Under the pieces are notes generated by a model that was not told where the DNA came from, did no database searches, and saw nothing but the letters and a program-made list of their open reading frames with translations. This document shows positions 3,172 through 62,196 of a stretch of 64,000 bases of DNA, piece after piece. Made by a program: the position numbers and the translations under genes. How positions within the stretch are numbered: position 1 is the stretch's first letter; each line of letters starts with the position of its first letter. The stretch lies in the IMG/VR virus record IMGVR_UViG_3300010389_000001, positions 62,001-126,000 of that record. The stretch is one strand, 5' to 3'.

Positions 3172-4773
3172 ATGTCGAAAGAAGTTTCGTTTGGAGCCGA
3201 GGCAAGAGCGGCTCTGCAAGAAGGTCTTGATATTCTTGCTAATGCTGTTAAGTCAACTCTGGGCCCAAGAGGGAGGCACGCCGCCATTGATAGGGGCTAT
3301 GGACCGCCTCTTATTACAAAAGATGGCGTAACTGTAGCACGCTCCATTACGCTTAGCGATAAGCTAAAGAATATGGGAGCTTCTCTAGTAAAAGACGTTG
3401 CATCATCCACTAATTCTTTAGCTGGCGATGGAACGACTACTGCTACGGTTCTTGCGCAAGCCATCTATAATGAGGGCGCTAAGATGGTTGCCGCTGGGCA
3501 CAATCCTGTCCTAATTAAAAGAGGTGTTGATTTAGCTACGGAGCGCGTAACATCAAGGCTTTTGGATGTATCAATTGACGTTTCTAGTCAGGAGATGCTT
3601 GAAAGTATTGCGGTTATTTCTGCAAACAATGATGACGCATTAGGAAGGCTAATTGCAGAAGCAGTTGCAGCAGTAGGCGAGAACGGACTAATCTCTGTCG
3701 AAGAGTCAACAGGAGCGGATACGACGGTTGCTTACTCCGACGGCCTATCGTTTGACCGTGGTTATATCCATCCAATTTTCGTAACGAATCAGGATAGATA
3801 TGTAGCGGAACTTGAGAATCCTTTTATCCTTTTCTACGATGGAAAGATAACAAATACAACAGACATAATGAAGGTAGCAACAGAGGTATCAGAAACAAAG
3901 AGACCGCTTCTGGTTGTAGCTCAAACAGTTATGGATGAAGCACTTGAGACTCTAAAGCTAAATAAGCAGCGCGGAGCACTGGCTTCCTGCGTGGTTAGAG
4001 CGCCTGGGTTCGGAGATATTAGGCGCGATATGCTGCTGGATCTAGCCGCTGTGACCGGAGGAAAGGTTCTTTCCTCTGATACTGAAGATCAGCTTTTGAG
4101 CGTCAGTCTATCAGATTTAGGCCAAGCAAGAAGAGTTCTGGTAACGCGAGATACCACTACTATTATTGACGGTGCTGGTGATGATGAAGAGGTTAGTCGC
4201 AGAGAAGAATCTATTAAGCAAAGAATGAGAACAGAAGCTCTTGAGACATACGAGATTGCTGCCTTTAGAGAGAGGCTGTCAAAGCTTGCTGGGTCTGTTG
4301 CCGTCTTTAGGGTGGGCGGAGTATCTGAGGCAGAAGTCAAGGAAAAGAAGGATAGAGTCGAGGATGCCATCAACGCCGTTAAGGCGGCTATAGAGCAGGG
4401 CGTTGTTCCGGGCGGCGGCTCCGCTCTCTTGCACTGTGTTGAGGATCTAGAGGCATTTATAAAGAGCGGGGACTTTATGCACGAAGAGGTTGTTGGAATG
4501 GAGGTTGTATCTCGTGCAATCAGAGCGCCATTTTCGCAGATACTAAATAATGCCGGCCTTGATTACCACCTTCATATGGAGACAATAATTAGGACGGACA
4601 ACATACAGTCAGGCTTTAATGCATTGAGGATGCAGCTTGAGGATAATATGGTTGAGGCTGGTGTAATTGATCCAGTTAAAGTTGTTCGAACTGCTCTTGA
4701 GAATGCAGCATCATCTGCCGGCACGCTGTTGACAACTCAGGTTGCTATTTTTGATGAAGAAAACCCGAAATAA
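3172..4773 (+). CDS. groEL: Group I chaperonin GroEL (phage-encoded)
   Basis: TLGPRGR, ITKDGVTVA, AGDGTTTATVLAQA, APGFGD, GVVPGGG, GVIDPVKV; no GGM tail. Confidence 0.97.
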   Translation: MSKEVSFGAEARAALQEGLDILANAVKSTLGPRGRHAAIDRGYGPPLITKDGVTVARSITLSDKLKNMGASLVKDVASSTNSLAGDGTTTATVLAQAIYNEGAKMVAAGHNPVLIKRGVDLATERVTSRLLDVSIDVSSQEMLESIAVISANNDDALGRLIAEAVAAVGENGLISVEESTGADTTVAYSDGLSFDRGYIHPIFVTNQDRYVAELENPFILFYDGKITNTTDIMKVATEVSETKRPLLVVAQTVMDEALETLKLNKQRGALASCVVRAPGFGDIRRDMLLDLAAVTGGKVLSSDTEDQLLSVSLSDLGQARRVLVTRDTTTIIDGAGDDEEVSRREESIKQRMRTEALETYEIAAFRERLSKLAGSVAVFRVGGVSEAEVKEKKDRVEDAINAVKAAIEQGVVPGGGSALLHCVEDLEAFIKSGDFMHEEVVGMEVVSRAIRAPFSQILNNAGLDYHLHMETIIRTDNIQSGFNALRMQLEDNMVEAGVIDPVKVVRTALENAASSAGTLLTTQVAIFDEENPK

Positions 4774-19617: not shown

Positions 19618-20814
19618 ATGATTCACGAAATAACAAAGACTCATTCTAGAATTGCGACCATCATAGTAGCATTTGATGCTGGCTCAAGAAACGAGAAGAG
19701 ATCAAGGCATAATTATGGCATAGCTCATATGCTTGAGCATTCTATCTTTAAGGGCACTCAAGAGATGAGTGCAATGGAGATCCAAAAGAAGATAGCTTTT
19801 TTGGGAGGAAGATCTAACGCCTTTACTTCGCATGAGATGGTAGCATACTATATCACTGTTCCTTATGAAAACATAGAATCCTGCATGAGCATTCTTTCGG
19901 ACATGGTATTTAATCCGGTTTTTCCTGAAGAAGAAATTATCAGAGAAATTGAGGTTGTGAAAGAGGAGGAAATGTCAACAAAGGACGATACCGAGGGATA
20001 TATCTGGAATGAATTTTCCTCTAAATTCTTTGGCGACCATTATCTTGGCGTTCCAGTCATTGGGTATCAGGATACGATCTCTAGGTTTACCAGGGATGAG
20101 ATCGATTCATTTCACAAAAGATTCTGCAGCAGAAAGGATGCTATCGTATCTCTTTGCAGTAACTTAACCAAAAAAGACTCAAAGGCTTTGCTTACTAAGT
20201 ATTTTGGCAAAGCCAGCGGCAGAACAAAGACGCACTACAAGTTTGATGACCCAGTTTACGGCGATTCATGCGAGCTAAACCTTTCTAGAACGGGGCTGGA
20301 GCATTCATACGTGTGGATGGGTATGCCATCTATAACCAAGTCCTCAGACATGGGGCCTTCCGTGAGGCTTCTTACGTCTATACTCGGATCCGGTATGGAC
20401 TCAAGGCTATTTGAGGAGGTAAGGGAAAAGCGAGGACTTGTATACGGGGTATCTGCATCATCCAGCGAATGGCAAAATGGAGGGCTATCTCTGGTTGAAT
20501 TTTCCACTAGAGAGGCAAACGTAGAAGAGGGTATGCAGGTGGTCCTGGGTGAGCTAGAGAAGATCAAGACCACACTTGTTAGCGACGAGGAAATCCAGAG
20601 AGCAAAAAACAAGATTAGAGCTTCTTTCTATTCGGCTATAGAGGATAGTTACAACCTAGCATCCTGGGCTCTAAAGAAGAGGCTCGTAGGTATACCTGAG
20701 ATTGATGATTATATGAGGATGATAGATGAAGTGAGCCCAGAGGATATAAGGGCTGCTGCAAAAGAAATATATAATACAGATAAGCTTTTGACATGCATCT
20801 GTAGAGGCGATTGA
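19618..20814 (+). CDS. M16-family zinc peptidase
   Basis: AGSRNE, GIAHMLEHSIFKGT (HxxEH), NAFTS, SRLFEEVREKRGLVY; ATG 19618 lies after the terminator. Confidence 0.93.
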   Translation: MIHEITKTHSRIATIIVAFDAGSRNEKRSRHNYGIAHMLEHSIFKGTQEMSAMEIQKKIAFLGGRSNAFTSHEMVAYYITVPYENIESCMSILSDMVFNPVFPEEEIIREIEVVKEEEMSTKDDTEGYIWNEFSSKFFGDHYLGVPVIGYQDTISRFTRDEIDSFHKRFCSRKDAIVSLCSNLTKKDSKALLTKYFGKASGRTKTHYKFDDPVYGDSCELNLSRTGLEHSYVWMGMPSITKSSDMGPSVRLLTSILGSGMDSRLFEEVREKRGLVYGVSASSSEWQNGGLSLVEFSTREANVEEGMQVVLGELEKIKTTLVSDEEIQRAKNKIRASFYSAIEDSYNLASWALKKRLVGIPEIDDYMRMIDEVSPEDIRAAAKEIYNTDKLLTCICRGD

Positions 20815-20825
20815 GTCGCTTACCC

Positions 20826-20850
20826 CCCCGGCAGTGATGCTGGGGTTTTT
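20826..20850 (+). terminator. Intrinsic terminator
   Basis: CCCCGGCA-GTGA-TGCTGGGG-TTTTT. Confidence 0.8.
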
Positions 20851-20900
20851 AATTTGTGGACCGCTCTAATGCTGTGCCTATAATATGGGAGAGGGGTAGC

Positions 20901-21095
20901 TTGAGCGACTTTACCAATTCAAATCCTGCTGATATAGCTTGCCTAACCAATCACCTAATAGCCGCTATAGATAGTTACATTAGGGAAGTGCCAACCTATA
21001 AGGAGGATCTTTATAGGGCGGAATCTGAGGTTAGTAGATATCTTTTTGATTTAGCAAATTATTGCGACGAAAAAGGTCATGCAGATGAGCGGTAA
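20901..21095 (+). CDS. Small hypothetical protein
   Basis: TTG start after GAGGGG; TATAAT at 20879-84. Confidence 0.45.
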   Translation: MSDFTNSNPADIACLTNHLIAAIDSYIREVPTYKEDLYRAESEVSRYLFDLANYCDEKGHADER

Positions 21096-21123
21096 TGGGT
21101 AGCCGTCTATCCGGGAGAATGAT

Positions 21124-21360
21124 ATGGCAAGATACAATTACATGCTTCCGAGAACGGAGCAGATTAGAAGGTGCAGTAACGGACTAGAGCATTATTACGT
21201 CCCCATATCTGTGTGCGCGAGCACAAATAGTGTTGGCGTTCGCTTTGTATGCAAGAGATGCGAAGCTCTAGCCGCAGGATTCTTTACAGAAGAAGAATAC
21301 GAGCTTAGAAGAAATACTATAGAAAAAGCAATAGAGAAAGCGGGAGGAACTTTGGCATGA
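21124..21360 (+). CDS. Small Cys/His-rich (Zn-binding?) protein
   Basis: C..H and CKRC motifs; GGAG RBS. Confidence 0.5.
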   Translation: MARYNYMLPRTEQIRRCSNGLEHYYVPISVCASTNSVGVRFVCKRCEALAAGFFTEEEYELRRNTIEKAIEKAGGTLA

Positions 21361-21584
21361 AGGAGCAGGTTAATCATCCCGGCCACTACCAGTTTGGAGA
21401 GAAGGACGCAGATGGAACTTCGAAGTACGAGGCAATAAAGGTAATTGAAGCTTGGGATTTGGACTTTCATCTTGGGAATGTTGTAAAATATGTTTCGAGA
21501 GCGGGAAGAAAAAGCGAGTCTCCGCTCCAAGATATTAAAAAGGCAAAGTGGTATCTTGATAGGTGGCTGGAGAAAAATAGTTAG
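21357..21584 (+). CDS. DUF3310-family phage protein
   Basis: VNHPGHY, FHLGNVVKYVSRAGRK, DIKKAKWYL. Confidence 0.9.
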   Translation: MKEQVNHPGHYQFGEKDADGTSKYEAIKVIEAWDLDFHLGNVVKYVSRAGRKSESPLQDIKKAKWYLDRWLEKNS

Positions 21585-21594
21585 GAGGGTTGAG

Positions 21595-21885
21595 GTGAAT
21601 TATACAAATCAATATTATCCAGTGGCTATAGCTCTAACTAATGAGTGGGGCTGGCAAGCGATCTATGAAGGCTTTGACTTTAGGGGCCTCACCTTTGAAA
21701 AGGTCTTTTGGTTGCGGAGTCCATCAGATGAGCTTGGGCTGCAAGTTGGGCTTTACACAAGTCAGAATAGTTCTAGCGAACTTGCTGGCGGAGAGAATAT
21801 GCTTGTGCCTGAGCTATACCGAATGATAAAGTCATTCGATATTGAGCTTGATTTGGAAAAGATAAAGGAAGATGGCCGAAAATGA
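21595..21885 (+). CDS. Hypothetical protein
   Basis: GTG 21595 after AGGAGG. Confidence 0.5.
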   Translation: MNYTNQYYPVAIALTNEWGWQAIYEGFDFRGLTFEKVFWLRSPSDELGLQVGLYTSQNSSSELAGGENMLVPELYRMIKSFDIELDLEKIKEDGRK

Positions 21886-22370
21886 GGTTTGTTGACGTAT
21901 TTGATCTTCCGGAGGAAAGGCCCAAGAGAATCGTTATAGCCTCAGGTTATTTTAATCCTTTGCACGTAGGGCATGTGGAGTATCTGCATTTGGCCAAATC
22001 ATGCGGAGACGAACTATGTGTTATCGTAAACAATGATGTTCAGCGCGCCTTAAAAGGTTCGAGCTATTTTATGAATGAGCAAGAAAGGCTGTTAATTATC
22101 AAAAGCCTGAGAGATGTTGATCATGTTATTCTTTCAATAGATGATGACAGAACCGTGTGCAATACTCTTCGTGAAATAAGTAAGGTTCATGCTCCGAAGT
22201 GGCATAATAATTGTAACCTTTATTTTGCAAACGGCGGCGATCAAAAAAATGACTCAATCCCAGAGAGAGCAGTTTGCGAAGAGCTAGGCATAGCCCTAAT
22301 TGATCGACTGGGCGAAAAGATTCAGTCTTCATCATGGCTTATAGATGGAGGTAGAAATGAGCCTTATTAG
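21882..22370 (+). CDS. Cytidylyltransferase-like nucleotidyltransferase (HxGH family)
   Basis: SGYFNPLHVGH, VIVNND, FANGGD, KIQSSS. Confidence 0.88.
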   Translation: MRFVDVFDLPEERPKRIVIASGYFNPLHVGHVEYLHLAKSCGDELCVIVNNDVQRALKGSSYFMNEQERLLIIKSLRDVDHVILSIDDDRTVCNTLREISKVHAPKWHNNCNLYFANGGDQKNDSIPERAVCEELGIALIDRLGEKIQSSSWLIDGGRNEPY

Positions 22371-22569
22371 AAAGAGCGCATTTCATATGGTTGTTCGCTG
22401 TGGATTGGGCGCTCACGGAGCAATTCATTTGATTGAATTTTTCATAAACTTGTTTGAGCGAGCCTGGGGATCTGCATTCTTCACGCTTTTGGCGGCCTTA
22501 CTAATGCTGTCAGGCGCCTTAATTGATTATCAGCACCATTCTGAGGGAAAATATGAAGTACCAAGTTGA
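22357..22569 (+). CDS. Small two-helix membrane protein
   Basis: Two hydrophobic segments; GGAGGT RBS. Confidence 0.5.
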   Translation: MSLIRKSAFHMVVRCGLGAHGAIHLIEFFINLFERAWGSAFFTLLAALLMLSGALIDYQHHSEGKYEVPS

Positions 22570-22921
22570 CGTAGATTACATTGGAGCAAACACTAAAATT
22601 GTGTGGACTTACAATGGCGAAAAACATTGTGAGCATGGACCTGCAGTTTGGTGGCAAGACGGAACTTATGACTTTTATTTAAATGGGGTATCGCTTTCGG
22701 TAAGCGAGTGGGAAGAGGCTGTTGACAGGCAGTGGAACCCTCAAGCAAAAAGGTCATCAAGAAGGGAGTTCCCCAAAGTTTATCTCGTAACGAAAGTTAC
22801 TTCGAATGGTGCCTCCGAACCTGTTGCAACTTTCGATTCCCTGGCGAAAGTTGATGAGTTTATTCTGAAGAATGAAACTGATGAAATTTGGTTCAACTGG
22901 GTTCAAGTAGAGCTTAGGTGA
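22553..22921 (+). CDS. Hypothetical protein with one HxxxGPAV viral beta-repeat
   Basis: KHCEHGPAVWWQDGTYDFYLNG. Confidence 0.5.
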   Translation: MKYQVDVDYIGANTKIVWTYNGEKHCEHGPAVWWQDGTYDFYLNGVSLSVSEWEEAVDRQWNPQAKRSSRREFPKVYLVTKVTSNGASEPVATFDSLAKVDEFILKNETDEIWFNWVQVELR

Positions 22922-23345
22922 TCTGCACGCGCGCTTGCAAGTGCGCCTGAAATGGAGGCTTCAGATATGAGAAAGAAAAAGGTAGTTGGAGATTTATGTC
23001 CTAGCTGCGATGATTCAGTAGAGTGGTATCCGATTCCTGATTCACTGGCATCAGCCTGCGAAGATTGCGGATTCGTCAGAATTTACTTAGGAGAAAAGGA
23101 TGCTGAAGGAAACTTACTTTATGATGTAGGCGTCTCAATCCCCGAATGGTTGCAGAGTCTTTATGAGCCAGATGTTAGCGGCAGCCTGCGGAGGGCAAAG
23201 TGACCAAAGGAAACGATCGCTTATTTTGCTCAACTAATAATAAACATTTGTTTATTTTGAAATCCGATTGCTCTCATGACTGGATCTATCTCGGCGGTCA
23301 CAATGAGCTTTGGGTTTGCAAGAAATGCGGAACTAAGGAAAGGCG

Positions 23346-23552
23346 ATGAAAGTCGGTGATAGAGTAAGAGTCAAGAAAGATGGGCAACTTTGTTGGGCGA
23401 AGTCAGGCAGGATATATGTTCCAGACTTTTATATCGGATATGTGACTTATGTGAATCACGGGAATGGAAATCTGATGGTTCATCTGGAAGAATTAGATGA
23501 CAGAGTTCAGACTAGCATTGAGCACTGGATTGAGGTAGAGAGCGAAGAATGA
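23346..23552 (+). CDS. Small MKVGD-type (SH3/KOW-like) phage protein
   Basis: MKVGDRVRV start; similar starts at 23549 and 31209. Confidence 0.55.
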   Translation: MKVGDRVRVKKDGQLCWAKSGRIYVPDFYIGYVTYVNHGNGNLMVHLEELDDRVQTSIEHWIEVESEE

Positions 23553-24586
23553 AAGTCAGAGATCTTGTAAGGCCAAAAAGTCAGTGGGATGAAAACTTCA
23601 AAAAGAAAAAGCATGATATTGGTCTTTTAATAGACATTGAAAAAGACTTCTATCGCCACAACGATTATTTTCAAGATCGTTTGACTATCTTGTGGTCACA
23701 TGGTGAAATAACAAAAGAGCCCCCTGGCTATGTGGAGGTTATGAAATGAGCAACGAAGATCAAATCGCAAAAGAAATCGCTAAAATGACTGATGATGAAG
23801 TTATTCAAAATGTCGAGAAGTATTTCCCGAAATGGACTGCAACCGAGTCTATGAAGCGTATGCTCACCAAATACGGACGTTTGGATGAACAAGTTTATTT
23901 TCTTGAGATTCTTCGTCTTGAGTCTCTTTGTCGCAGAGCGGCAGAGGAGATCAAAATGCTTGATGATAAGTTGCAAGAGATTTCGCCCGATCCAGATGGC
24001 ACTCACACCTCTGTAAATCTGCTTTCAAGACTTGACGGACGGATTGGTGGGTGGTATACTATGACTGAGCCAAACGAGGAGAAGTGATGAAAGTTTGGGT
24101 CGTAACAAAACGATGGGTTCACGAAGATCGTATGAATGTTGCCGTTTTTTCAACGGAAACGGCAGCGTACAATTTTGTTAGAGACAATGAGACAGACGAC
24201 AATTGGCGAGTTTGTTTTGATGTTGAAGAGTGGGAGGTTGATAGTGAGTGTAAAATGGCGAAGGCTTGTGATATTATTTGATTTGTAAGGAGAAATAATG
24301 AGCGCTGACAAGACTGGGTGTCCTAAGTGTGTAACTGGATCTATTCAAGAAACTTATCTCACTCCCCCAGATAAAGGAAAAGTGAAGGGATGTAATCGCT
24401 GTTCATATTTTCATTACGACCCATACGAAGTGGATTGGGGTGCTCTTCCACCAGAGGTCTTCGACCAATACACAAATGCCTGTGAAGAGGTTAAGAACCC
24501 TGTGATTGTTGAATCCACACCAAAAAAGAAGCAAAGTCACTTCGAGAAGTTGTATCACATGAATCTTCTCGTGAACGAAAAAAAAG

Positions 24587-24615
24587 TTGACACAGAGACC
24601 TAAGTGGGCTATACT
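24587..24615 (+). promoter_or_regulatory. Near-consensus sigma70 promoter
   Basis: TTGACA-17 nt-TATACT with an A-tract upstream; predicted start ~24622. Confidence 0.85.
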
Positions 24616-24621
24616 GTGAAC

Positions 24622-24743
24622 ATAGAGTGAGGCGGTATTACGCAGGGTTCTACTGAGACGATACACGACCCGGTTCAAGGAATAAGCGTCTAACAAAGGA
24701 ATACTTGAACATCTGTGGGTTTAAACCCCACCACTCTATTCCA
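24622..24743 (+). ncRNA. tRNA-like non-coding RNA, non-canonical
   Basis: Acceptor ATAGAGTG/CACTCTAT plus T-CCA; T-arm GTGGG-TTTAAAC-CCCAC; three internal helices; no canonical 7-nt anticodon loop. Confidence 0.7.
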
Positions 24744-25710
24744 TAATGAAGTTACCCCGATTGTAAGGATCAAGCAGGAGAGGGATAAACTCCATGATTG
24801 CTAATCTGCGGGTGGGGCTGGAAACAGTCAGTTAGGTGGGTTGGTTGCCTAACACCTTTTGGGAGAGAAGAATGAATGATAGACAAGGGCACCCAGAGCC
24901 AGAAGATTGTTGGCTTTATTACTGTGTGAGCCTGAAAGAAGAATACAGAACCGAAGAAGGGCAAATTCGCATTCATCCATCACTTCCTATCGAGGGGGTG
25001 GTTAGTGCGGATCTAACCGATCCTGATGTTTTTTGTGTGGTTCACGGAACAGGATCAATGGTGAGAATGCTCCAAGAACACAAAGGGTTTTATGAAAAGA
25101 AGGAATATGCAAACGAGTTTGCTGAATTTATGTTCAGTTTTGCTCAACAAAACTTGGAGAGAAGAAAATGAGCGATGAGTTTGTAGACAAGAAAGGTATT
25201 CGGTGGCATCCCAAAGAAATGCTCAATGACCTATCACAGCGTCTCGAAACAGCCAAAGCATTTCACAGAGTTGCCGTAAAAGAAAGAGATTACGAGAGAA
25301 CTCTCTGCGACCGATACAAAAAAGAACTGTACGAACTTCGCTCACTTTACGAAGGTGTTCTTTCTCGCATAAACAAGTTGGAAGACGATACAAGGTCAGC
25401 GATAGAGTTTGCCGACCTCGCAGAAGACGATAAGGGAACAGAAATGATCTTAGAATTCTGCGATGATATTACAAAGTTGGTTGGAGAGTGAAGGTGAGCC
25501 AACAAGAGGTAAAACAAGCAGTTGCTCCGATGTGGATAAATCTTGATGCTGCCAACAACCGTCTTAGGCAAATCTCACAACTTTGCTGGGAACTTGTAAA
25601 CGAACTAAGAGAAGCAGACAATCTTCTTGTTGGCGAATACCCAGATGAATTTTCAAAAGTTTTTGACGTAGCAAACGAAATAGAGTCTTGGCTTATTGAG
25701 GGAAAGCAAA

Positions 25711-26091
25711 ATGAAAACAGTTAGTTCTATTGTTCAATCAGAGATTCTTCAGCAACTGCTGGAAAACCAAAGGCGTTTTGCCGAGGTTGCTAAACCTCCT
25801 TTCTATCCTAAAACTTGGAAGGAGTTTCGCAATCGAGAACTCGCAAACTATATGAGCCGCGAAAGGGGAAAGAAGCGTCTTCGTAAGAAAAAGGCTCTCA
25901 AGAGAATGCGAGAAGTCTGGGGTTTCTATCTTCTTACCCGACCAGTAAGCCATTTTGTGAACTACCAAGAGCTGGGAAGAAAGCTGTTCCCCGTCCAGCC
26001 TCTCCCAGATGGCGCAAAGCTCATTTACAGCAACCACACTGATAACGAAAGGCATCGCATCGCAGAGATTATCAGAGGGAAGATCGAATGA
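25711..26091 (+). CDS. Basic hypothetical protein with capsid-protein-like segment
   Basis: VNYQELGRKLFPVQPLPDGAKLIY. Confidence 0.45.
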   Translation: MKTVSSIVQSEILQQLLENQRRFAEVAKPPFYPKTWKEFRNRELANYMSRERGKKRLRKKKALKRMREVWGFYLLTRPVSHFVNYQELGRKLFPVQPLPDGAKLIYSNHTDNERHRIAEIIRGKIE

Positions 26092-28484
26092 GTTCTAGCG
26101 TCGAAATCAAAACGGACGGATGCAAGTCTCTTTACCTTGATATAAAGACCACAGGTGTAGAGTTTGAGGCTTGGAATCAAGATTATCCAGAAGCGGAACT
26201 CATTACGATGTGGTTTGATCTGAAAGACAAGGAAGATCGAAAGGCAATCAAGAATCTTATTTCACATCTCCAGCATCAGTTGCAGGTTCATGAATCACCT
26301 CCCTATTCTACCTGTCCTTCCTGTTCTTGGCTAAAAAGAGAGCGAGGTGTTGAGGCCTGTGAGGAGCATAGCAAATGATTGGAACAGCAAAGAGGCTTGT
26401 TGAATGTCGCTATTTCCGATGGCTTCCGGGTATGCGAGACTTGGGCGGAAACTTTTATCTTGGGCAAAGAGCAAATGCACCAGAAGGCGTTCATATGTGG
26501 GCCGGTTTTGATAGGGGAAGTTGGGAGTGGAACGAAACAGAGTTTGGACTACCAGACCTTGAAGATCCCGCAACCCTTGGGTGCGTTCTTGCTTTGGTTC
26601 GCAACGCTTGGAAAGACGATGGTATTGCGTGTGTAACGGGTTCTTACACCGCAGAGTCAGGTTACAGGTTTCGCATCATTGGTGGAATGCGCCAAGATAC
26701 AAAGTTCTTTATGATGAGCCAAAAGCATTACCTTTCAGAAGGCGAGGCACTTGTTGCTGCTTTGGAGTTGGCAGGATGACTAACGAAGATTTCAACAAGA
26801 ATATGAGCAGAATGTTCTTTCGTCTTGGAAATGCTTTCCGCGATGTAAGAGACAATATGATCGAAAACTTTGGAAGAGAAAACGATACATCAGAACTTCT
26901 CTTTCGCCTTGAAGAAGTTTGCGATATTATGATTGAGCATTATGGGGAGGAAGAATGATTTCTCTTTACGGAATCAGGGAAGAACATGAATATGGTTACG
27001 GCGGCTGGACAGGAAACCGAGAGACTATCCGAGAGCTTGTTGCTACTTTCGATGAAGTTCAAGATGCAAAAGACTATGTGAAAAACTCAACGCTTGCAGC
27101 AGCAGATAAGCCCTACTTTCGTGCTGATCCCATTTCGGGAAAGTTTAGATATAGAAAAGGTTCTTTACTTCGCCATTATGAAAGCTGCGAGATTGAGATT
27201 GAGGAAGAAGAAAACCCTCCTCCTCATAATCCGATAATGCCAAATGGAGACTATTAATGAAACAAGATGCTGCATACATCAATTCCTACAATGCCGGATA
27301 CCACAGAGGTCTAAATACTGAATACCACGATATTCCAATCAACATTCTTTTCACTAAATGGATTGCTGATGTTCGCAGACCAGCATCAGAGGCACTTGAT
27401 ATTGTTGCTTTTGAGAAAGGCTTCAATGACGGCATAGAAGATTATGAAGATTCTCTGAAAGAATTCGGAGACGGAGCAGCAACTACAGCAGGTTGGGAGA
27501 AAAAATGAAAGAAACACTTGAAGACTTTATGAAACAATTGCACCACAACCACACCTCATTTGAGGAATTGGCTCATTGGTATCATGATTTAGAAAAAGAA
27601 TGTGCAAACCTTAAAGAGAAAAACGAAAAGATGTTTGAGGTCCTAAGGATTATTTGGGATGCCGATGCACTTCAGCAGTGGGCTTGGGAAGATCCTGATG
27701 ATGAAGGTTCAATTGCTGACTTGGTTCGTGAAGTTGTGAGAGGCAAATAACAATGGATATTAGACCAGAAAACAACAAAGACACTTTTCGCGGAAGAGGC
27801 AAAACCATCGAGGAGTTGAGAGATCAAGTTAATTTCTTAAATGAAGAACGAGAGCGCTTAATCAAGAAGCTTGAAAAGATCGAAAATCTTTCTCGGTACG
27901 CTTGGGAACAAGTTAGCAGAAATCCGGAAGAAGCAGTAGAGCTTTTTAGAATGATAAACTTTGAGAGTAAGTGATGAACGATTATTTTGAAGATCTATCT
28001 TACGAACTAAGAGAAGAGGTTAGCGATCTAAAAGAACAACTTGGCGCTCTAAAGTCTATTATTCGCCAAACCTACAAGGCGATTGGCTGCTCTGACGATA
28101 TTATCGAAGGAGAAGATTGGGGAGGTTTGCCTTCAAGGGTTGCTTGTCTCAAAGCGGCTGTTGACCTATCGATTCAGCGAGGAAAGGAAGCTGAGAAAAA
28201 TCTTGAGATCTATCGACGGATTGATCAGTTGGAGTCAATTGTAGAGTCTGTGCTTGATGATAGAGATATTGAGGACTCTTACTACGTTTTGAAAACAGAC
28301 TATGACGCCTATCAAGAAGAGCATTACGCGATCAAGCACGACCGTCCTCACAAGGAAGTAGGAAGAGGAAGGGCGGCGAAGGTTCATAGAGTTCCAACTG
28401 CTGACGAGATGGTTGCGTCTCAACAAATGACAGCACCAACAAGGCTGGAAATTGAATGGAGAAACATTCAAAAGGTGAATGAGA

Positions 28485-28709
28485 ATGAGTAACTATCAAC
28501 TATTGCAAAAACTCAAAAAAGCGTTTGAAAAAGCCAAGAAGACCGACCGTTCTTTTGAAAGAGCCCTGCATTTCAGAGGGGATATGTTCAGACTTGAAGA
28601 AGAGTTGTTTGAAGCACTCGGAGCAAAAGACACCTCAAAGTGGTATGACTGCGCTCATTGTGATGCCGGATACCCAGACCAAGAATGTACTTGTGAGAAC
28701 GAAGAATGA
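28485..28709 (+). CDS. Small protein, paralogue of 30567
   Basis: AFEKAKKTDRSFERALHFRGDMFRLEEELF; Cys-rich tail. Confidence 0.65.
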   Translation: MSNYQLLQKLKKAFEKAKKTDRSFERALHFRGDMFRLEEELFEALGAKDTSKWYDCAHCDAGYPDQECTCENEE

Positions 28710-29523
28710 AATGGCTCTTTGCACACTTTATATTTCTGCCCTTTATTTGGATCATGGATAAGCTTGGAATTAGGCCATAGGTGAAAGATGACACGTAGAG
28801 AAATTATTTGTGTGATTACTGGTGCTTTAATTGTGGTAGTCCCACAGTGGATCAGCGTACTTTGTCAATTGATATTGTCGTAAAGGAGAGCAAAAAAAAT
28901 GAAAAAGTGGGCAGTTTATCAATCGCGTTCAAAGTATGATCTCTCAAAAGGTTTTCGTAAGAATCCAAAAGGTTATGTGATTGCGGAGACTGAGGACGAA
29001 GCACACGTTGAAGTGGGCAAATATATTTTTATTCCAGATGGCTATTGGGCCAAAGTTGTCGAGGTGGAAGAATGAAGGTTCGCATTGACTACTCACACTA
29101 CGTTATTGTAGATGTGCCGGACAGTATCATTAAACAAGATGAGAACGGATATTATGGCGATTTGCCATTTGAGTTTGATGAAATGTTTGAAGTTCTAAAG
29201 GCCCATGTCCCAGAGGGGGCAGAGGTAGAGGGTTGGGAATATCCAGACTTGTTGCCAGAGGGTGGAGAATGAAGGATGGTGATTTCTACAAATTTAACTA
29301 TGACTTCAAGCCATTTGTTACTTTTTTTCAGTCAAAAGTCGCGAATCCTGACGCGATCTTTCTGTACTTGTTTAACAACAGGTTTCGTGTGAATTATACA
29401 CATAATAAGTCCGAAACAAGAGAGACAGGCTTTTACTTTCATGTCTTTATGCCAGAAAGCTGGTACTTACAGGTCTGTTTTTGCAATCACAACTTTGGAT
29501 TTACTTGGTAAGGAGAGCGAAGA

Positions 29524-29916
29524 ATGAATGGTAGTATTAACGTAACCCATCACCCGGAACATAACTTCACAATTTATCGTGGAAATTCTGGCACAGGCAA
29601 AACAGCGCTATTGGCAGGTCGAGCAACTCAAGCAAATTGGCATGGCAAAAAGGTGCTGTGGCTTTCTACTGATATTGCAAACGATCACATTCGTAACATT
29701 GCAACTGATTGCATTAGGGTTTATGATCTGTCAACACTGCGTCAAATTATGGACAGCGATCAGTTTCATCTTTATGATATGGTTGTATTCGATGATATTG
29801 GGCGATTGGACGTTCCCATGGATATGCTAAGTGCTCAGTGCATTGCAGACTTTCGCAGTCGCAACAAAAGGGATGGGCAAGTTCGATTGTGCTCGCTCAC
29901 GGTGAGGAAAATGTAA
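29524..29916 (+). CDS. Small P-loop NTPase-like protein
   Basis: GNSGTGKT Walker A, MVVFDD Walker B-like. Confidence 0.6.
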   Translation: MNGSINVTHHPEHNFTIYRGNSGTGKTALLAGRATQANWHGKKVLWLSTDIANDHIRNIATDCIRVYDLSTLRQIMDSDQFHLYDMVVFDDIGRLDVPMDMLSAQCIADFRSRNKRDGQVRLCSLTVRKM

Positions 29917-30566
29917 TGAATTATTATGTAGAAGAAGAGGCCAGTAAGGCTGGCTATAGGCCTATTGAACAAGATGAGTGGGAAGAAGTTGTTTCAGAGG
30001 GCTTTATTTACAATGATGTAACCAAGGTAGGGTTTAGGCGATACAGAATTGTTGAATTAAATGAGCGATGGTATTGCTGGGTTACTGAACCCCGTTATGC
30101 TCAGCCTGCTGATCCTAAAACATGGCACACTTGCTGGGAAATTGATTCAAAGATTGAGATTAGCATAGAAGGCTTTCAGCGCTATCGAAATTTTTTTATT
30201 GAGATAGAACAGCTTATTAGTGATAAATAACGAGGTCATTGTGAATTTTTCCGTAGAAGAAGAAGTCCGCTCCCTTATATTAGGTGAGCGATTTGCTGGT
30301 GAGTTTCAGGGCGTCTCTTACGAGGTAAAGATTTGTTGGAGCGAAGACTGGACCGTAAACGTTGACCTGTTAAAATTTAAACCGCGCATGGGTTCGCACA
30401 CACATTTCTGGCTGAGTAAAATTACAAACGTGATTATCGAAGAAGTTCTTTACGATGCTATCTACGAACTTCCAGAAGTAGTAGATTTTCAAAAGCGGAT
30501 TGATGCTATGCGAGATGTTGATGAAGATGTTTTGGATAGCATTATTGAAAAGGTGGAGAACGAAGA

Positions 30567-42092: not shown

Positions 42093-43255
42093 GAGCTATT
42101 ATATGCGGTGATGCTCATATCGGAGCTATCTTTGGGCTTGGAAGGCCAGACGGCAATGGCGGAAACACCAGGGTAAATGATTATGTTAAAAGTCTAAATC
42201 ATATTGTAGATTACGCGATTTCTTCTAAAGCCGATATATTCATTCAGACCGGTGATATATTTGAGCATAGAGATCCGGACGTTAGACACATGGCGATTGT
42301 TGATTCAGCACTAAAAAAGCTATCAAATGCTGGTGTCTCTACTTTTGTTATTATGGGTAATCATGATTACAGAAGAAACGGCTCTAGCTTTACGAGTTCC
42401 ATTACATCCCTGGCTGCAGCAGATTATCCGAACGTTCGAATGGTGTTGGACCCCGAAGTTATAGAGGTATCGAACAACGATGGCGATTCATCGAATTTGC
42501 TGCTCATTCCTTTTCGGGACCAAAGAATGTATGCAGGCAAGGGGAATCGGGACAAGTCCGATAACTTTGAGAAAGAAATACGAAGTTTGATTGAGGGGAT
42601 ACAAAACCAGAATCCTACAATCGCTGTGGGGCATAACTTCTTTTTTGAAGGAAGTTACAACGACTACGGCGGATCTGAACTTATGGCTAGGCCCGCAGCG
42701 TTCGAAGGCTGTGACGTAGCCCTAATGGGTCACCTTCATCAGTTTAGAGTTTTAAGAAAAAGATCGCCAGTTTGTATCTATACTGGATCGATGGAAAAGT
42801 CGAACTTTGGTGATGCAAACGTTGAGAAGTATTTCATTGATTATGATATTTCCACAAAAAAGGCTTCCTTTAAAAAGGTCCCAAGCAGGGATCTTGTTGA
42901 TGCATCTATAGACCTGACTGGCCTTGACTTTGCTGATATATCAGATGGTATCGACAAGGAGATTGCGAAGCATGACCTTTCTGATAAAATTGTAAGATTT
43001 AAATTTGTTATTGATGAAAAGGTTCTTCCTGCAGTAGACAAGAAATCTATAACAGACAAACTGTATGCCGCTGGGGCTTTTTATGTATCAAAGATTATTA
43101 TTGAAGTCGTAGCGAAAAGAATTGTTCGAGACAATTCTGTCCTTGAGCACAAAGATGATTATTCTATGTTTAAGGCTTTTGTGGAAAAGCAGGGCTTGGA
43201 TGCATCAATGCTAGAAGAGATGCTGAAAGAAGCTAAGGTCATAATGGAGGCATAA
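42089..43255 (+). CDS. sbcD: SbcD/Mre11-like nuclease
   Basis: GDAH, GDIF, GNHD, GHN, GHLH, YTGS. Confidence 0.9.
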   Translation: MRAIICGDAHIGAIFGLGRPDGNGGNTRVNDYVKSLNHIVDYAISSKADIFIQTGDIFEHRDPDVRHMAIVDSALKKLSNAGVSTFVIMGNHDYRRNGSSFTSSITSLAAADYPNVRMVLDPEVIEVSNNDGDSSNLLLIPFRDQRMYAGKGNRDKSDNFEKEIRSLIEGIQNQNPTIAVGHNFFFEGSYNDYGGSELMARPAAFEGCDVALMGHLHQFRVLRKRSPVCIYTGSMEKSNFGDANVEKYFIDYDISTKKASFKKVPSRDLVDASIDLTGLDFADISDGIDKEIAKHDLSDKIVRFKFVIDEKVLPAVDKKSITDKLYAAGAFYVSKIIIEVVAKRIVRDNSVLEHKDDYSMFKAFVEKQGLDASMLEEMLKEAKVIMEA

Positions 43256-45360
43256 TGATTCCGACCAGATTACATTTGAAAAATTTCTTTTCTCATAAGG
43301 ACAGCGAGATAGATTTCACCACATTCGATTCTGCGTTGCTTATTGGCAATACGGAGGGCGACTACGATAAGTCGAATGGCTCTGGAAAAAGCTCTATATT
43401 TGAATCGATGCTCTGGTGCTTGTTTAATAAGTCTAGGCAGTCGATGATGGATGATATCGTCCGATGGGGAGAGACGGAATGCTCTGTTACTCTTGAGTTT
43501 GTTCATAGCGATACAAAGTATCGTGTTATTCGAACAAGGAACAGGCTAAGCTCTACATCAAGCGTGTCTCTTTATTACGTTGATATGGCGGGCGACTGGG
43601 TAGATATATCTGGTTCGACAGCTGGCTACACAAACTCCAAGATAGAAGATCTAATTAAGCTAGAATACAAAACTTTTATCAACTCGGTGTATTTCAGGCA
43701 AAATGATATATCAGAATTTGCGGAAGCGGAGCCTTCTAGGAAGAAGGAGATTTTGAAATCAATAATAGATATATCTAGATGGGACTCCTATGAGAAGACC
43801 GCCAAAAAACTTTCAAAGGATATTTCTGACGAATGCAAGGTGTTGGTAAAGTCTACCGAGTCCTATGACGAACAATATCAGAGTCTGATTGATCTTAGGG
43901 CGGAAATAGAAGACAAGAAGTCTGTTATATCATCTTTGGGCAAAGATATTGCAAGTTTGGCCGAATCAAAGAGGGCCTTATCAAGGCGGTATGATGAAAT
44001 CAAGAATTCACTTGACACTGATACTTACGATAGAGTGATTGATGATCTAGAAAAGCTCAGAGAGCAGAGAGCATATCTTATCAAATCTGAGGCAAGCCAG
44101 CAGAGTCAAATAGAAGAAACGGAGAAGGAAGCGGGAAGGTATGCGGAACTCGTAGGAAAATTAAAAGATTTTCTTGCTTCAAAGGAAACAATAGAAGTAA
44201 GTGAGTCTGAAATTCAAGCTTATAAAGATGAGCTTATAAGCTTAAAAGCCGAGAAGAAATCATGCGAAGAGTTTGTAGCTTCGCTGGATGAAATTTCTAT
44301 TACACCAGATCAGTGCTATGTATGCAAACAAGGTATTGATGAAGATCTTTATTCAAAATTGGTCAGAGACATAGAGGGTAAGAAGAGCGATTACAATGAT
44401 AAAAAGGTTAGAGCAATAAATCTAATTATCGAGCATGAAGAAAAGCTTAACGCTCTGCAGGAAACAGTAAAGATAAATAAGAAGATCGCTTTAGCAGAAG
44501 AAAAGCTGTCTGATTCAGAGCCAACCTTAGAGCTGCTTAACTCAAATTGTGACAAGCAGAGAGAGAGATTGGGCGAAATATCAGATAAGCTAAGAACTGT
44601 GATGATGAGTATTGAGACAAATATCGGCATCCTGAACTCTATCAAGCGAGAGGACTTCCAGGAAATCAGGAAGAAGCTGAGAGAGACTGAGGAAAAAGAG
44701 ACTAAGTTGAAAGAGGCGGCTTCGCTGGAGGATAGGGAGCTTGGAAGGCTAATCGAGAGGGAATCGCTGTTAAAAGAGGCGGTGGATAAGATTCTTGAGG
44801 ACAAAAAGAAAGTAACAAGCAAGATGGAAAAAGCATCGCTCTTTGTTCGCCTCTCAAAGATGTTTGGCAAAAACGGTATACAGTCTATTCTTCTTGATGC
44901 AATTATTGAAGATCTAGAAAAGACATCTAACATTACTCTTTCATCAATATGCAATGAGCCTGCTACAATTGTTCTTGAGACGCAGAGAGTCGGCTCAGAT
45001 GGCTCTTCCCTCATAGAGACGCTTGACCTAAAGGTTAGAAAGGATGGAAATCTTCAGAGCTTTAAGTCTTTGAGCGGCGGGGAGAAGTTCAGAATATCTC
45101 TTGCCCTAAGAATTGCTCTTAGCGAGATATCCTCAAGATACGGAGGGTCATCCTTGGAATTTCTTCTGCTAGATGAAGTTAACTCGCCATTGGACCGATT
45201 CGGCGTCGAGACCTTATTCGTAAATGTAATAAAGTCTCTAGAAGAAAAGTACAAGATTATGGTCATTACTCATGATGAGTCACTAAAGGAAAAGTTTGAT
45301 AATATCATTGATTCCACAAAGATCAACGGCGATACAGAGATTGTCTTTACGAGAAGATAA
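43255..45360 (+). CDS. sbcC: SbcC/Rad50-like ATPase
   Basis: NGSGKS, coiled coils, CYVC zinc hook, LSGGE, LLLDE, ITH. Confidence 0.93.
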   Translation: MIPTRLHLKNFFSHKDSEIDFTTFDSALLIGNTEGDYDKSNGSGKSSIFESMLWCLFNKSRQSMMDDIVRWGETECSVTLEFVHSDTKYRVIRTRNRLSSTSSVSLYYVDMAGDWVDISGSTAGYTNSKIEDLIKLEYKTFINSVYFRQNDISEFAEAEPSRKKEILKSIIDISRWDSYEKTAKKLSKDISDECKVLVKSTESYDEQYQSLIDLRAEIEDKKSVISSLGKDIASLAESKRALSRRYDEIKNSLDTDTYDRVIDDLEKLREQRAYLIKSEASQQSQIEETEKEAGRYAELVGKLKDFLASKETIEVSESEIQAYKDELISLKAEKKSCEEFVASLDEISITPDQCYVCKQGIDEDLYSKLVRDIEGKKSDYNDKKVRAINLIIEHEEKLNALQETVKINKKIALAEEKLSDSEPTLELLNSNCDKQRERLGEISDKLRTVMMSIETNIGILNSIKREDFQEIRKKLRETEEKETKLKEAASLEDRELGRLIERESLLKEAVDKILEDKKKVTSKMEKASLFVRLSKMFGKNGIQSILLDAIIEDLEKTSNITLSSICNEPATIVLETQRVGSDGSSLIETLDLKVRKDGNLQSFKSLSGGEKFRISLALRIALSEISSRYGGSSLEFLLLDEVNSPLDRFGVETLFVNVIKSLEEKYKIMVITHDESLKEKFDNIIDSTKINGDTEIVFTRR

Positions 45361-61870: not shown

Positions 61871-62196
61871 TTAGAGCCGTAGGTAACAAGAGGCTGGATC
61901 TTAACGATGCAGAATATGACTATTATCTTGAAATAAAAAAAGCCGTAGGAGATGCTGATTTTCTGGGGCTATTTGATACGGATAAAAATGGTTTAATTAC
62001 GGGGATAATGCCGCCGGTTGATAAGGGCATAAATGTAATGGTTATTTATTTCGTTTTAAACGTTATGATAAATCAAAGAATAAGGATTTTAGAATCCTCT
62101 ATTAAAAAAGTCGAAAGTTTCGTAGACCAGATCGGCGCGCTGCCTAATATAATTGAGAGGCTGGAACGGCTCGAAAGAAAGGAGGAGGAAAAATGA
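61867..62196 (+). CDS. Hypothetical protein
   Basis: Coupled ORF, 109 aa. Confidence 0.55.
   Translation: MIRAVGNKRLDLNDAEYDYYLEIKKAVGDADFLGLFDTDKNGLITGIMPPVDKGINVMVIYFVLNVMINQRIRILESSIKKVESFVDQIGALPNIIERLERLERKEEEK

Follow-up and report, generated by a model that had tools for sequence, protein, structure and literature searches.

The window analysed here is a stretch of 64,000 nucleotides (positions 62,001 to 126,000 of IMG/VR record IMGVR_UViG_3300010389_000001, a 232.5-kb record of an uncultured aquatic jumbo phage that is 68% complete). On its plus strand, a sigma-70-type promoter occupies positions 24587-24615, with TTGACA at 24587-24592, a 17-nt spacer, and TATACT at 24610-24615. With 11 of 12 consensus positions matched, it is the best promoter match between 20000 and 30000, and it is one of only three exact TTGACA-N16-18-TAnAnT sites in the record. 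The -10 hexamer ends 6 nt before a 122-nt element at 24622-24743 that folds into a closing helix and four hairpins, and the likely transcript start is at 24622. The flanking ORFs have no informative Pfam or PHROG family, the only hit being DUF7336 for 24084-24281.

The closing helix, P1, pairs 24622-24629 with 24732-24739 and is followed by the tail UCCA (24740-24743). P2, at the D-arm position (24632-24643), is a GCG/CGC stem with the 6-nt loop GUAUUA, which has no G18/G19 equivalent; it is preceded by an invariant AG junction and followed by an invariant A at 24644. P3, at the anticodon-arm position (24645-24671), has a 5-bp GGGTT/GACCC stem (24645-24649 with 24667-24671) and a 17-nt loop that starts CUACUGA. 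P4, at the position of a long variable arm (24673-24710), has a 7-bp GTTCAAG/CTTGAAC stem (24673-24679 with 24704-24710) and a 24-nt loop bounded by GAAUA on both sides, and is followed by a 4-nt linker. P5, at the T-arm position (24715-24731), has a 5-bp GTGGG/CCCAC stem and the 7-nt loop UUUAAAC, and runs straight into the P1 3' strand as a tRNA T arm does. Additionally, the two large loops appear to kiss, with GAGAC in the P3 loop (24655-24659) facing GUCUA in the P4 loop (24688-24692), although in the window itself only four of the five pairs form because G24655 faces A24692.

Downstream of this core lie three further hairpins. Hairpin A pairs 24752-24757 with 24810-24815, and in this phage its loop holds a 42-nt hairpin insertion at 24764-24805 that is present in about 20 of 32 distinct cassettes. 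Hairpin B (24816-24829) has a GAAA tetraloop and compensatory variants GAUUG/CAAUC and GAGCA/UGCUC. Hairpin C plus a U-run (24831-24860) resembles an intrinsic terminator; its stem is conserved, with a compensatory change from U-A to C-G in L182, and the U-run is 4-7 nt long across members (here and below, L and G numbers denote individual copies of the element or the contigs and phage records that were compared, G000 being the present phage). This 3' domain was defined by alignment and RNAalifold. It is followed directly by a Shine-Dalgarno sequence (24861-24867) and the ATG (24872) of an ORFan for which no relatives were found in viral contigs.

Every sequence element in the original prediction was found where it had been placed, and the observation is confirmed. 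The centroid fold and the RNAalifold consensus both reproduce the five-helix structure. In contrast, the single-sequence minimum free energy fold keeps only P1, P4 and P5 and re-pairs the P2/P3 region (GGCGGUAUU with GAUAC.AC.CC); this alternative is disfavoured, since two natural variants, C-to-A at the hypervariable loop site and G46-to-A, break it and yet fit the five-helix model. Folding energy of one sequence alone is not significant (z = -1.38 for the element, and z = 0.05 for the longer transcript), and the evidence that the fold is more than chance is comparative.

A first pattern scan built on the P4/P5 stems returned mostly chance matches in coding DNA, and only hits of exactly 47 nt were homologues. 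In total, the family, which is common in estuarine, marine and freshwater jumbo-phage contigs, matched 25 viral and 102 metagenome stretches (the sequences of 22 of the latter did not enter the analysis), yielding 45 distinct full-length homologues. Among these, 97.2% of structure cells are paired, against 35-43% when partners are slid, 17 of 28 pairs show changes on both sides, and 0 of 500 shuffles reach any of the five measures. G-U cells outnumber A-C cells 70 to 4, so this is an RNA of the plus strand. Compensatory changes occur in seven of the eight P1 pairs, six of the seven P4 pairs, and three of the five P5 pairs (GUGGG/CCCAC becomes GCAGG/CCUGC). In P3, U-A changes to C-G in the G021 copy and U-G to U-A in L005, while the U-G closing pair is kept in 44 of 45 members. 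The P2 stem is invariant in all 45 members, and most of P3 never varies; conservation supports these helices, but covariation does not prove them. The P4 loop motifs GAAUAAGA and GGAAUA are kept even in the most divergent copy. For the loop-loop contact, 92% of cells are paired, against 14-62% when slid; its outermost pair is C-G in 21 members, U-G in 13, U-A in 10 and other in 1, and a G-C pair becomes C-G in G021.

Three details are particular to the subgroup of the window and not to the family. The eighth (outermost) pair of P1 is a standard pair in only about half the members (24 of 44), P1 having seven pairs in most others and six in G021. The encoded CCA is present only in the window's subgroup and is absent from most members, other tails being UGCA, UGUA, UAUA, UCAAA and UCUUU. 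The P5 loop sequence also varies (UUUAAAC, UGAGAAC, UGAAAAU or GGAAGAU), and only a subset has the canonical UUCAAAU; its length is 7 nt in all but the L002 type, which has 6, and loop position 1 is U and position 5 is A in nearly all members.

Upstream of the element, 33 of 51 distinct sequences carry a promoter match of at least 9 of 12 that ends 3-13 nt before P1, whereas shuffles give a mean of 1.7 and a maximum of 6. Across the family, 18 different -35/-10 hexamer pairs sit at this place, with a modal gap of 6 nt. Most copies run on into the three hairpins, although L149 and L180 have a different terminator within about 5 nt of the module, and in L074a, L075, L111 and L116 the module sits about 40-55 nt before a start codon with no terminator. 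In L072 and L084 a fresh promoter follows the terminator. Downstream ORFs are unrelated ORFans of at least nine kinds. Some copies lie in tRNA arrays: the G021 copy is 8 nt after tRNA-Arg(tct), L149 is among seven tRNAs, and L084 is in a tRNA cluster. Others (L152, L153, L154 and L176) replace a hairpin loop in the pseudoknot ring of otherwise normal phage tmRNA genes. Rfam tmRNA scores over loci containing the module were 92.9 and 108.5 bits, and alignment with the 377-nt tmRNA of this phage (G000 52650-53026) shows the module as an insertion of about 115-122 nt. L184 consists of a promoter, the module and the 3' half of a tmRNA.

Four metatranscriptome runs carry contigs over 24612-24871 at a depth of 11-140, with a depth of about 0 upstream and 0-8 in the bins just downstream, the fall lying at about 24866. 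However, this signal comes from assembled contigs without strand information or mapped transcript ends, and it is confounded because the module is conserved among many phages while its flanks are not.

Sequence and model searches did not assign the element to a described family. ARAGORN finds no gene in the window, and Rfam gives nothing at the locus at gathering score and nothing but noise at E up to 10, including no tRNA, tmRNA, Y-RNA, YrlA, riboswitch or ribozyme. No near or distant DNA match to 24300-25200 was found in GenBank phages. A motif scan of prokaryote genomes gave 20 matches, all scoring 15 bits or less with the family covariance model R1 and so attributable to chance; no bacterial or archaeal species genome holds a copy. 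The models R1 and R2, applied to 25-29 related jumbo-phage records, found no members beyond G000, G021, G030, G031 and G032, the other hits, at about 22 bits, being tRNAs. Related near-complete genomes such as G013 (94% complete) lack the module, so it is dispensable. The same models hit genuine tRNAs (tRNA-Leu 13.5 bits, tRNA-Met 12.8, tRNA-Ile 22.9, T4 tRNA-Ser 21.4), as well as the 3' 97 nt of T4 RNA C (17.7 bits).

The interpretation given in the original prediction is partly supported. That the element is a promoter-driven, tRNA-shaped RNA that does not decode is supported, as are the conserved and covarying extra helices, so it is not a decayed tRNA. In contrast, the analogy with bacterial tRNA-Sec, drawn from the 8+5 acceptor/T stack, is not supported, since the eighth pair is kept in only 24 of 44 members, the D-like stem has 3 bp rather than 6, and there is no UCA in a 7-nt loop. 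The T-CCA end is not conserved, and in some relatives the element is internal to a tmRNA. The labelling of the last large hairpin as the anticodon arm is also not supported, since by position P3 is the anticodon-arm equivalent and P4 the long variable arm. The suggested roles, as a decoy (for instance for anticodon nucleases or RelA) or a processing signal, remain conjectural. The original prediction did not include the continuation of the RNA to a putative terminator at about 24860 or the occurrence of the module inside phage tmRNAs and in tRNA arrays.

Overall, the region from 24622 to about 24860 is best read as a gene for an autonomous, early-expressed, small structured non-coding RNA shaped like a class II tRNA, a reading that we consider about as likely as not. 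What the analysis itself establishes is that the conserved core has the connectivity of a class II tRNA, namely a 7-8-bp closing helix, a 2-nt linker, a 3-bp D-like hairpin, 1 nt, a 5-bp anticodon-like arm, 1 nt, a 7-bp variable-arm-like hairpin, 4 nt, and a 5-bp/7-nt T-like arm stacked on the closing helix; that it cannot decode, as the anticodon-position loop has 17 nt (31 in G021), appears to pair with the loop of the next hairpin, and is accompanied by no conserved CCA; and that the module is autonomous, occurring behind at least 18 different host-type promoters predicted to start transcription at or near its first base, in tRNA arrays, and as a clean insertion in a tmRNA hairpin loop. The remainder is inference. 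The common denominator of these contexts would be abundant production of the RNA domain, either from strong early promoters or by riding on stable-RNA transcripts, so that it would act through its own fold and not as a regulator of a particular downstream gene. The acceptor/T minihelix would give it tRNA-like stability and, where embedded, may also give recognition by tRNA-processing enzymes. The invariant P2, junction and kissing-loop face would be the functional surface, binding an as yet unidentified host or phage factor that normally handles tRNA-shaped RNA, so that the RNA would work as a decoy or sponge. However, searches of the phage record, which is 68% complete, found no Ro/TROVE or SmpB gene, and canonical tRNA tertiary signatures are missing, as there is no GG in the D-like loop and C56 is absent in most members.

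Other explanations are less likely, but not all can be dismissed. The module could be a cis-acting 5' leader that protects early mRNAs from decay or works with the downstream hairpins as an attenuator, thereby setting expression of the ORFan that follows. An ORF follows on the same strand in nearly all standalone copies, with the Shine-Dalgarno sequence right after the U-run, and RNA-library contigs (two records) span the terminator into the window's own downstream gene; in the four contexts without a terminator the module is a 5' UTR, and a cis role there cannot be excluded. However, the module also sits inside tmRNAs and in tRNA arrays, where there is no gene to regulate, a fresh promoter follows the terminator in L072 and L084, inspection revealed no covarying alternative pairing between the P1 3' strand and the terminator, and a simple stabiliser would not need invariant loops and a kissing interaction. 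This explanation is unlikely, and only slightly more probable than the possibility that the block is mainly a selfish or recombinogenic cassette, which spreads and shuffles ORFans by homologous recombination while the fold is tolerated or only self-serving. The latter would fit the one to two full copies per genome (plus a truncated copy in L186), the many different flanks, the deletion in L008 and L131 of the window's two upstream ORFs exactly between two promoter -10 regions, the frequent contig breaks at the element, its absence from close relatives, and the precedent of PeSL elements in T4-type phages (PMC2839356, PMC4122927). Recombination at the DNA level does not, however, explain the compensatory changes, the excess of G-U over A-C, the conserved pseudoknot, or the retention of the fold in the very divergent G021 copy; selection acts on the RNA.

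A tmRNA origin, in which the module arose as an elaborated pseudoknot of a phage tmRNA and the standalone RNA, with remnants of the pseudoknot region, competes with host tmRNA or its partners, is more doubtful still. The tmRNA-embedded copies and L184 are consistent with it, and a phage mini-tmRNA that inhibits host tmRNA is on record (cited in PMC11915505). The cassette's 3' domain resembles the tmRNA segment around the insertion site, and hairpin A weakly resembles the tmRNA hairpin whose loop hosts the module in relatives, but the similarity of the domain, suggestive by eye, is weak and not significant by local alignment (score 25, against 17.4 +/- 2.4 for shuffles with a maximum of 27). 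Additionally, copies in L149, L180, L074a and G021 lack that domain, no tmRNA model hits the window locus, and transfer may have occurred in either direction. A riboswitch aptamer or small self-cleaving ribozyme is very unlikely: although there is a closing P1, an invariant junction core, a loop-loop contact, and a terminator downstream in most copies, the downstream genes are functionally unrelated, the terminator lies about 55-120 nt away behind independent hairpins and shows no covarying switch, and the module occurs inside tmRNA and next to tRNAs. A decayed tRNA gene or chance fold, for which tRNA-like connectivity and an unremarkable folding energy might speak, is refuted by the 45 distinct homologues that keep all five helices and both enlarged loops under purifying and compensatory evolution, and by the dedicated promoters. 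A speculative and unlikely possibility, which the data nevertheless permit, is that RNase P and a 3' tRNase of the host cut out the module wherever it is embedded, releasing a trans-acting tRNA mimic that would neutralise a host factor sensing or cutting tRNA-shaped RNA during infection; in phages carrying it inside ssrA, this would also turn an in-line tmRNA gene into a two-piece tmRNA by a route different from gene permutation.

If it holds up, this is an undescribed, well-supported structured RNA family, absent from Rfam 15, from 50,697 GenBank phage records and from 185,579 prokaryote species genomes as far as these searches reach, which did not extend to the motif listings of an IMG/VR catalogue of 10,006 candidate structured RNAs (PMC10690425). 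It would offer a second, comparative handle on the 50-year-old puzzle of what phage tRNA-like stable RNAs are for. It would also show an RNA domain that moves as a module between its own promoter, tRNA arrays and the tmRNA pseudoknot ring, adding a fourth tmRNA gene form, and its invariant junction and kissing-loop face would be a defined surface for pull-downs aimed at a tRNA-directed host function or defence.

The closest analogues are T4 RNA C (species 1 RNA) and RNA D, which are likewise phage-encoded, non-decoding RNAs of about 120-140 nt with unknown biological roles (PMC3014915, PMC9697503). In T4 they directly follow tRNA-Arg, as the G021 copy follows tRNA-Arg(tct), and in the R1 alignment the 3' 97 nt of RNA C folds as a class-II-like cloverleaf with an 8-bp closing helix and a 5-bp T arm. 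There is no sequence homology, however, and the 17.7 bits come from shared architecture; RNA C has a canonical UUCGAAU T loop and lacks the conserved P2, P3 loop, P4 loop and kissing interaction. The T4 RNAs are annotated inside the tRNA cluster, whereas most copies here have their own promoter and terminator, and no tmRNA-embedded form of the T4 RNAs is on record in the literature consulted. Class II tRNAs (Leu, Ser, Tyr) match in the order and spacing of the five helices, including a 7-bp acceptor in about half the members, and the first 7 nt of the P3 loop have the pattern of an anticodon loop; reciprocal weak covariance-model hits support the match. They differ in the enlarged loops that appear to pair with each other here and in the lack of G18/G19, a conserved UUC and CCA, and tRNA detectors reject the element.

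With respect to tmRNA, the module itself contains a pseudoknot-like loop-loop contact and in some relatives occupies the pseudoknot ring, but the window copy is not part of a tmRNA. A tRNA-shaped insertion in the pseudoknot region is not among the three gene forms (standard, group-I-intron and permuted) described in PMC11915505, where the nearest item is a single tRNA-Ala inside the intervening sequence of one permuted gene. Bacterial and phage Y-RNA-like RNAs (YrlA) are also non-decoding RNAs with a tRNA-like domain, are bound by Ro/Rsr, and are reportedly found in some phages (Chen et al. 2014); here, no candidate Ro-binding stem was seen. Finally, the PeSL promoter-terminator cassettes of T4-type phages are, like this element, repeated blocks that contain an early promoter and lie in ORFan-rich regions with indels between copies. 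PeSLs, however, are short terminator/promoter composites based on stem-loops, whereas here a 122-nt covarying RNA fold with a five-helix junction is the conserved unit and the promoters differ.

The window comprises bases 62001-126000 of a 232.5-kb IMG/VR virus record from an uncultured jumbo phage, which has 42% G+C and is rated 68% complete by CheckV. The window encodes a GroEL-type chaperonin (3172-4773), an SbcC-like nuclease subunit (43255-45360), a 2324-aa ORF (49243-56217), and a DnaE-like polymerase (56593-59256). The lineage has no cultured relative above approximately 37% polymerase identity among GenBank phages. Outside the window, the record (G000:C1:23814-53026 and 136019-136387) carries seven tRNAs (Arg-tct, Leu-taa, Met, Lys-ctt, Pro, Thr, and Ala) and a 377-nt tmRNA with tag ANNNYHYNSVALAA, which lie at 23.8-53 kb, as well as a PolyA_pol/CCA-type nucleotidyltransferase, whereas it has no SmpB. 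The element lies in a run of short, co-oriented ORFan genes at about 20.8-35.6 kb of the window.

Every structural element in the original prediction is present in the sequence, and the observation is therefore confirmed. The promoter TTGACA-17-TATACT (24587-24615) is the best sigma-70 match in window 20000-30000, and is one of three exact sites of that kind in the whole record. Six bases after the -10 hexamer begins an 8-bp closing helix, P1 (24622-29 paired with 24732-39), within which lie P2 (GCG/CGC, 6-nt loop), P3 (GGGTT/GACCC, 17-nt loop), and P4 (GTTCAAG/CTTGAAC, 24-nt loop), followed by a 4-nt linker and P5 (GTGGG/CCCAC, 7-nt loop). The centroid fold and the alignment consensus both give this structure, although the single-sequence MFE keeps P1, P4, and P5 but re-pairs the P2/P3 region. 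The folding energy of one sequence is unremarkable (z = -1.38 and 0.05), and the window on its own cannot show that the fold is real. ARAGORN found no tRNA or tmRNA in the window, and Rfam 15 returned nothing at gathering score and only noise at E up to 10.

Homologues were sought in viral and metagenomic sequences. The upstream ORF led to three identical viral contigs that carry the element, and a stem-based pattern scan found more copies. A covariance model built on the predicted structure (R1) then found a very divergent copy in G021, a complete 395-kb relative. The core shared by both types served as a scan pattern and hit 25 stretches in IMG/VR and 102 in JGI and other metagenomes, of which cmsearch confirmed 77 matches, 54 of them distinct. 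A clean set of 45 distinct full-length sequences was aligned. In this alignment, 97.2% of cells form standard pairs, compared to 35-43% when partners are slid by 1-3 columns, and 17 of 28 pairs have changes on both sides; none of 500 shuffles reached any of the five measures. P1, P4, and P5 carry most of the covariation. In contrast, P2 and the three G-C pairs of P3 never vary, and thus only conservation supports them, while the fourth pair of P3 changes from U-A to C-G in G021. G-U cells outnumber A-C cells 70 to 4, and the selected structure is therefore an RNA of the + strand.

The two large loops carry complementary stretches at 24655-59 and 24688-92. Their outermost pair is C-G in 21 members, U-G in 13, U-A in 10, and other in 1, and the G021 copy has a different but again complementary pair of stretches, CCAACA and UGUUGG. 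Of the cells in this contact, 92% are paired, compared to 14-62% when slid, and a loop-loop contact is therefore likely. Additionally, the P4 loop is bounded by GAAUA on both sides in all members, which by inspection could extend the helix non-canonically.

Not all of the predicted features are conserved. The outermost pair of P1 is a standard pair in 24 of 44 members, and P1 is thus 7 bp in about half the family, 8 bp in the other half, including the window, and 6 bp in G021. The encoded CCA is absent from most members, in which other tails are UGCA, UGUA, UAUA, UCAAA, UCUUU, and CACACA. The P5 loop always has 7 nt except in one variant with 6, and almost always has U at position 1 and A at position 5, but only a subset has the canonical UUCAAAU. 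The loop at the D position has no GG, and the proposed comparison with tRNA-Sec therefore fails. Positionally, P3 (5 bp) is the anticodon-arm equivalent and P4 the long variable arm, which is the layout of class II tRNAs. That resemblance is measurable, as R1 and R2, the two covariance models, give 13-23 bits to genuine tRNA-Leu, tRNA-Met, tRNA-Ile, and T4 tRNA-Ser, and 17.7 bits to the 3' 97 nt of T4 RNA C.

In the window, the 122-nt module is followed by three more hairpins: hairpin A (24752-57 with 24810-15), hairpin B (24816-29, with a GAAA loop), and hairpin C (24831-53, followed by UUUU at 24857-60). The Shine-Dalgarno sequence and the ATG at 24872 of an ORFan follow. This 3' domain is conserved in 32 distinct cassettes, with a few compensatory changes. 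In about two thirds of these, a 42-nt hairpin (24764-24805 in the window) is inserted in the UUGUA loop of hairpin A, which is the same kind of loop that hosts the 122-nt module in the tmRNAs described below; the rest lack it. The primary transcript is therefore probably about 239 nt, from 24622 to about 24860, with some read-through.

Standalone copies commonly lie directly behind a promoter. Of 51 distinct upstream 45-mers, 33 carry a promoter match of at least 9 of 12 ending 3-13 nt (mode 6) before P1, with 18 different hexamer pairs, whereas shuffles give 1.7. The promoters differ while the distance is kept, which is strong comparative evidence that transcription starts at or just before P1. 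The downstream ORFs are of at least nine unrelated kinds with no family assignment. The 3' end also varies among the contigs (L handles) that carry the module: L072 and L084 have a new promoter after the terminator; L149 and L180 have a different terminator within about 5 nt of the module; and L074a, L075, L111, and L116 have no terminator, and the module lies about 40-55 nt before an ATG. There are up to two full copies per genome (in the related record G030). One contig, L186, has a full copy and, about 800 nt away, a truncated copy whose 5' half is replaced by unrelated sequence (L186:10886-10991 and L186:11766-11887, both minus strand); the second copy is followed by the window's own downstream gene. 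Near-complete relatives such as G013 have no copy, and none was found in the prokaryote species genomes searched.

Some copies are associated with stable RNA genes. In G021, the module starts 8 nt after tRNA-Arg(tct), and several hundred bases after it (L064:1633-2100) have no convincing ORF and contain further hairpins, which may be more non-coding RNA. The same genome has a group I intron (Rfam RF00028, 72 bits) followed by a T arm (L067:1098-1558; G021:C1:208170-208630), which is probably an intron-interrupted tRNA gene, although ARAGORN does not call it. In L149, the module lies among seven co-oriented tRNAs. In L084, it lies in a tRNA cluster, where the 5' half of a tRNA (acceptor, D arm, and the start of the anticodon stem; L084:4170-4215, minus strand) abuts the module with no 3' half nearby.

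In L153, L154, L152, L161, and L176, the module lies within a tmRNA that Rfam scores at 92.9-108.5 bits (gathering score 47), with a normal tRNA-like domain and the tag ANNNNYELALAA. The phage tmRNA genes at L153:214-673, L154:2222-2679, L176:94-580 (minus strand), and L152:1-426 are of 460-487 nt; the tag called by ARAGORN (DPDRGIRV) falls inside the insertion and is spurious. In an alignment with this phage's own tmRNA, the module is a clean insertion of about 115-122 nt that replaces the loop of one hairpin in the pseudoknot region. A hybrid, L184 (655-912), consists of a promoter, the module, and the 3' half of a tmRNA (helix 2 strand, T arm, acceptor 3' strand, and CCA) without the 5' half, and may be an intermediate between the tmRNA-embedded and standalone forms, or a pseudogene.

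Four metatranscriptome runs from three studies hold contigs over 24612-24871 at summed depths of 11-140, whereas depth is about 0 over the 600 nt upstream and 0-8 in the bins just downstream. The oligo-dT library is strongest next to the terminator. These observations fit a discrete, abundant RNA but do not prove it. The data are unstranded assembled contigs that may contain DNA, and because the module is conserved across many phages while its flanks are not, the coverage boundaries coincide with conservation boundaries.

Overall, the original interpretation is only partly supported: the RNA is tRNA-like, non-decoding, and promoter-driven, as predicted, but the Sec-like and CCA details are wrong. 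The analysis shows a new structured RNA family with an unusual modular distribution, and excludes both a decayed tRNA and a chance fold; any function, in contrast, is inferred. The feature common to all contexts is production of this self-closing RNA domain, either from strong host-type promoters or on stable-RNA precursors, and it is therefore read here as an autonomous small RNA that works through its own fold. The acceptor/T-like coaxial stack would give tRNA-like stability and, where embedded, possibly recognition by tRNA-end-processing enzymes, while the invariant P2, junction, and kissing-loop face is the likely binding surface. A decoy or sponge for a factor that handles tRNA-shaped RNA is the most economical mechanism, but this is inference only.

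A riboswitch or attenuator for a specific gene is hard to reconcile with the unrelated downstream genes, and harder still with copies that sit inside tmRNA and between tRNAs. However, a cis role as a 5' stabiliser, a mainly recombinational role similar to that of PeSL cassettes, and a tmRNA-related role all remain possible. The PeSL-like aspect is real at the DNA level (PMC2839356, PMC4122927). The window has a second promoter at 24031-24060 (TTGACG-17-TATACT, with an upstream TG), and the identical sequence sits directly in front of the module in L008 and L131, where the two intervening ORFs, 24084-24281 (DUF7336) and 24298-24603, are missing, suggesting a deletion between the two -10 regions.

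In comparison to known systems, a catalogue of 10,006 candidate structured RNAs from IMG/VR exists (PMC10690425), and prior listing of this family as an anonymous candidate cannot be excluded. The current tmRNA census lists three gene forms (standard, group I intron in the T loop, and permuted) and notes a single tRNA inside the intervening sequence of a permuted gene (PMC11915505). A tRNA-shaped insertion in the pseudoknot ring is not described there, and the module-bearing tmRNAs would thus be a gene form not listed in that census. The nearest analogue is T4 RNA C/RNA D, small RNAs from the T4 tRNA region whose roles are still unknown (PMC3014915, PMC9697503). There is no sequence homology, and T4 RNA C lacks the conserved loops and the kissing contact. 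However, the T4 RNAs are annotated right after tRNA-Arg, and by the R1 alignment the 3' 97 nt of T4 RNA C (L210:1406-1502, minus strand) form an 8-bp closing helix, D-like, anticodon-like, and long extra arms, and a canonical T arm, which together make an 8/5 class-II-like cloverleaf with a 42-nt 5' extension.
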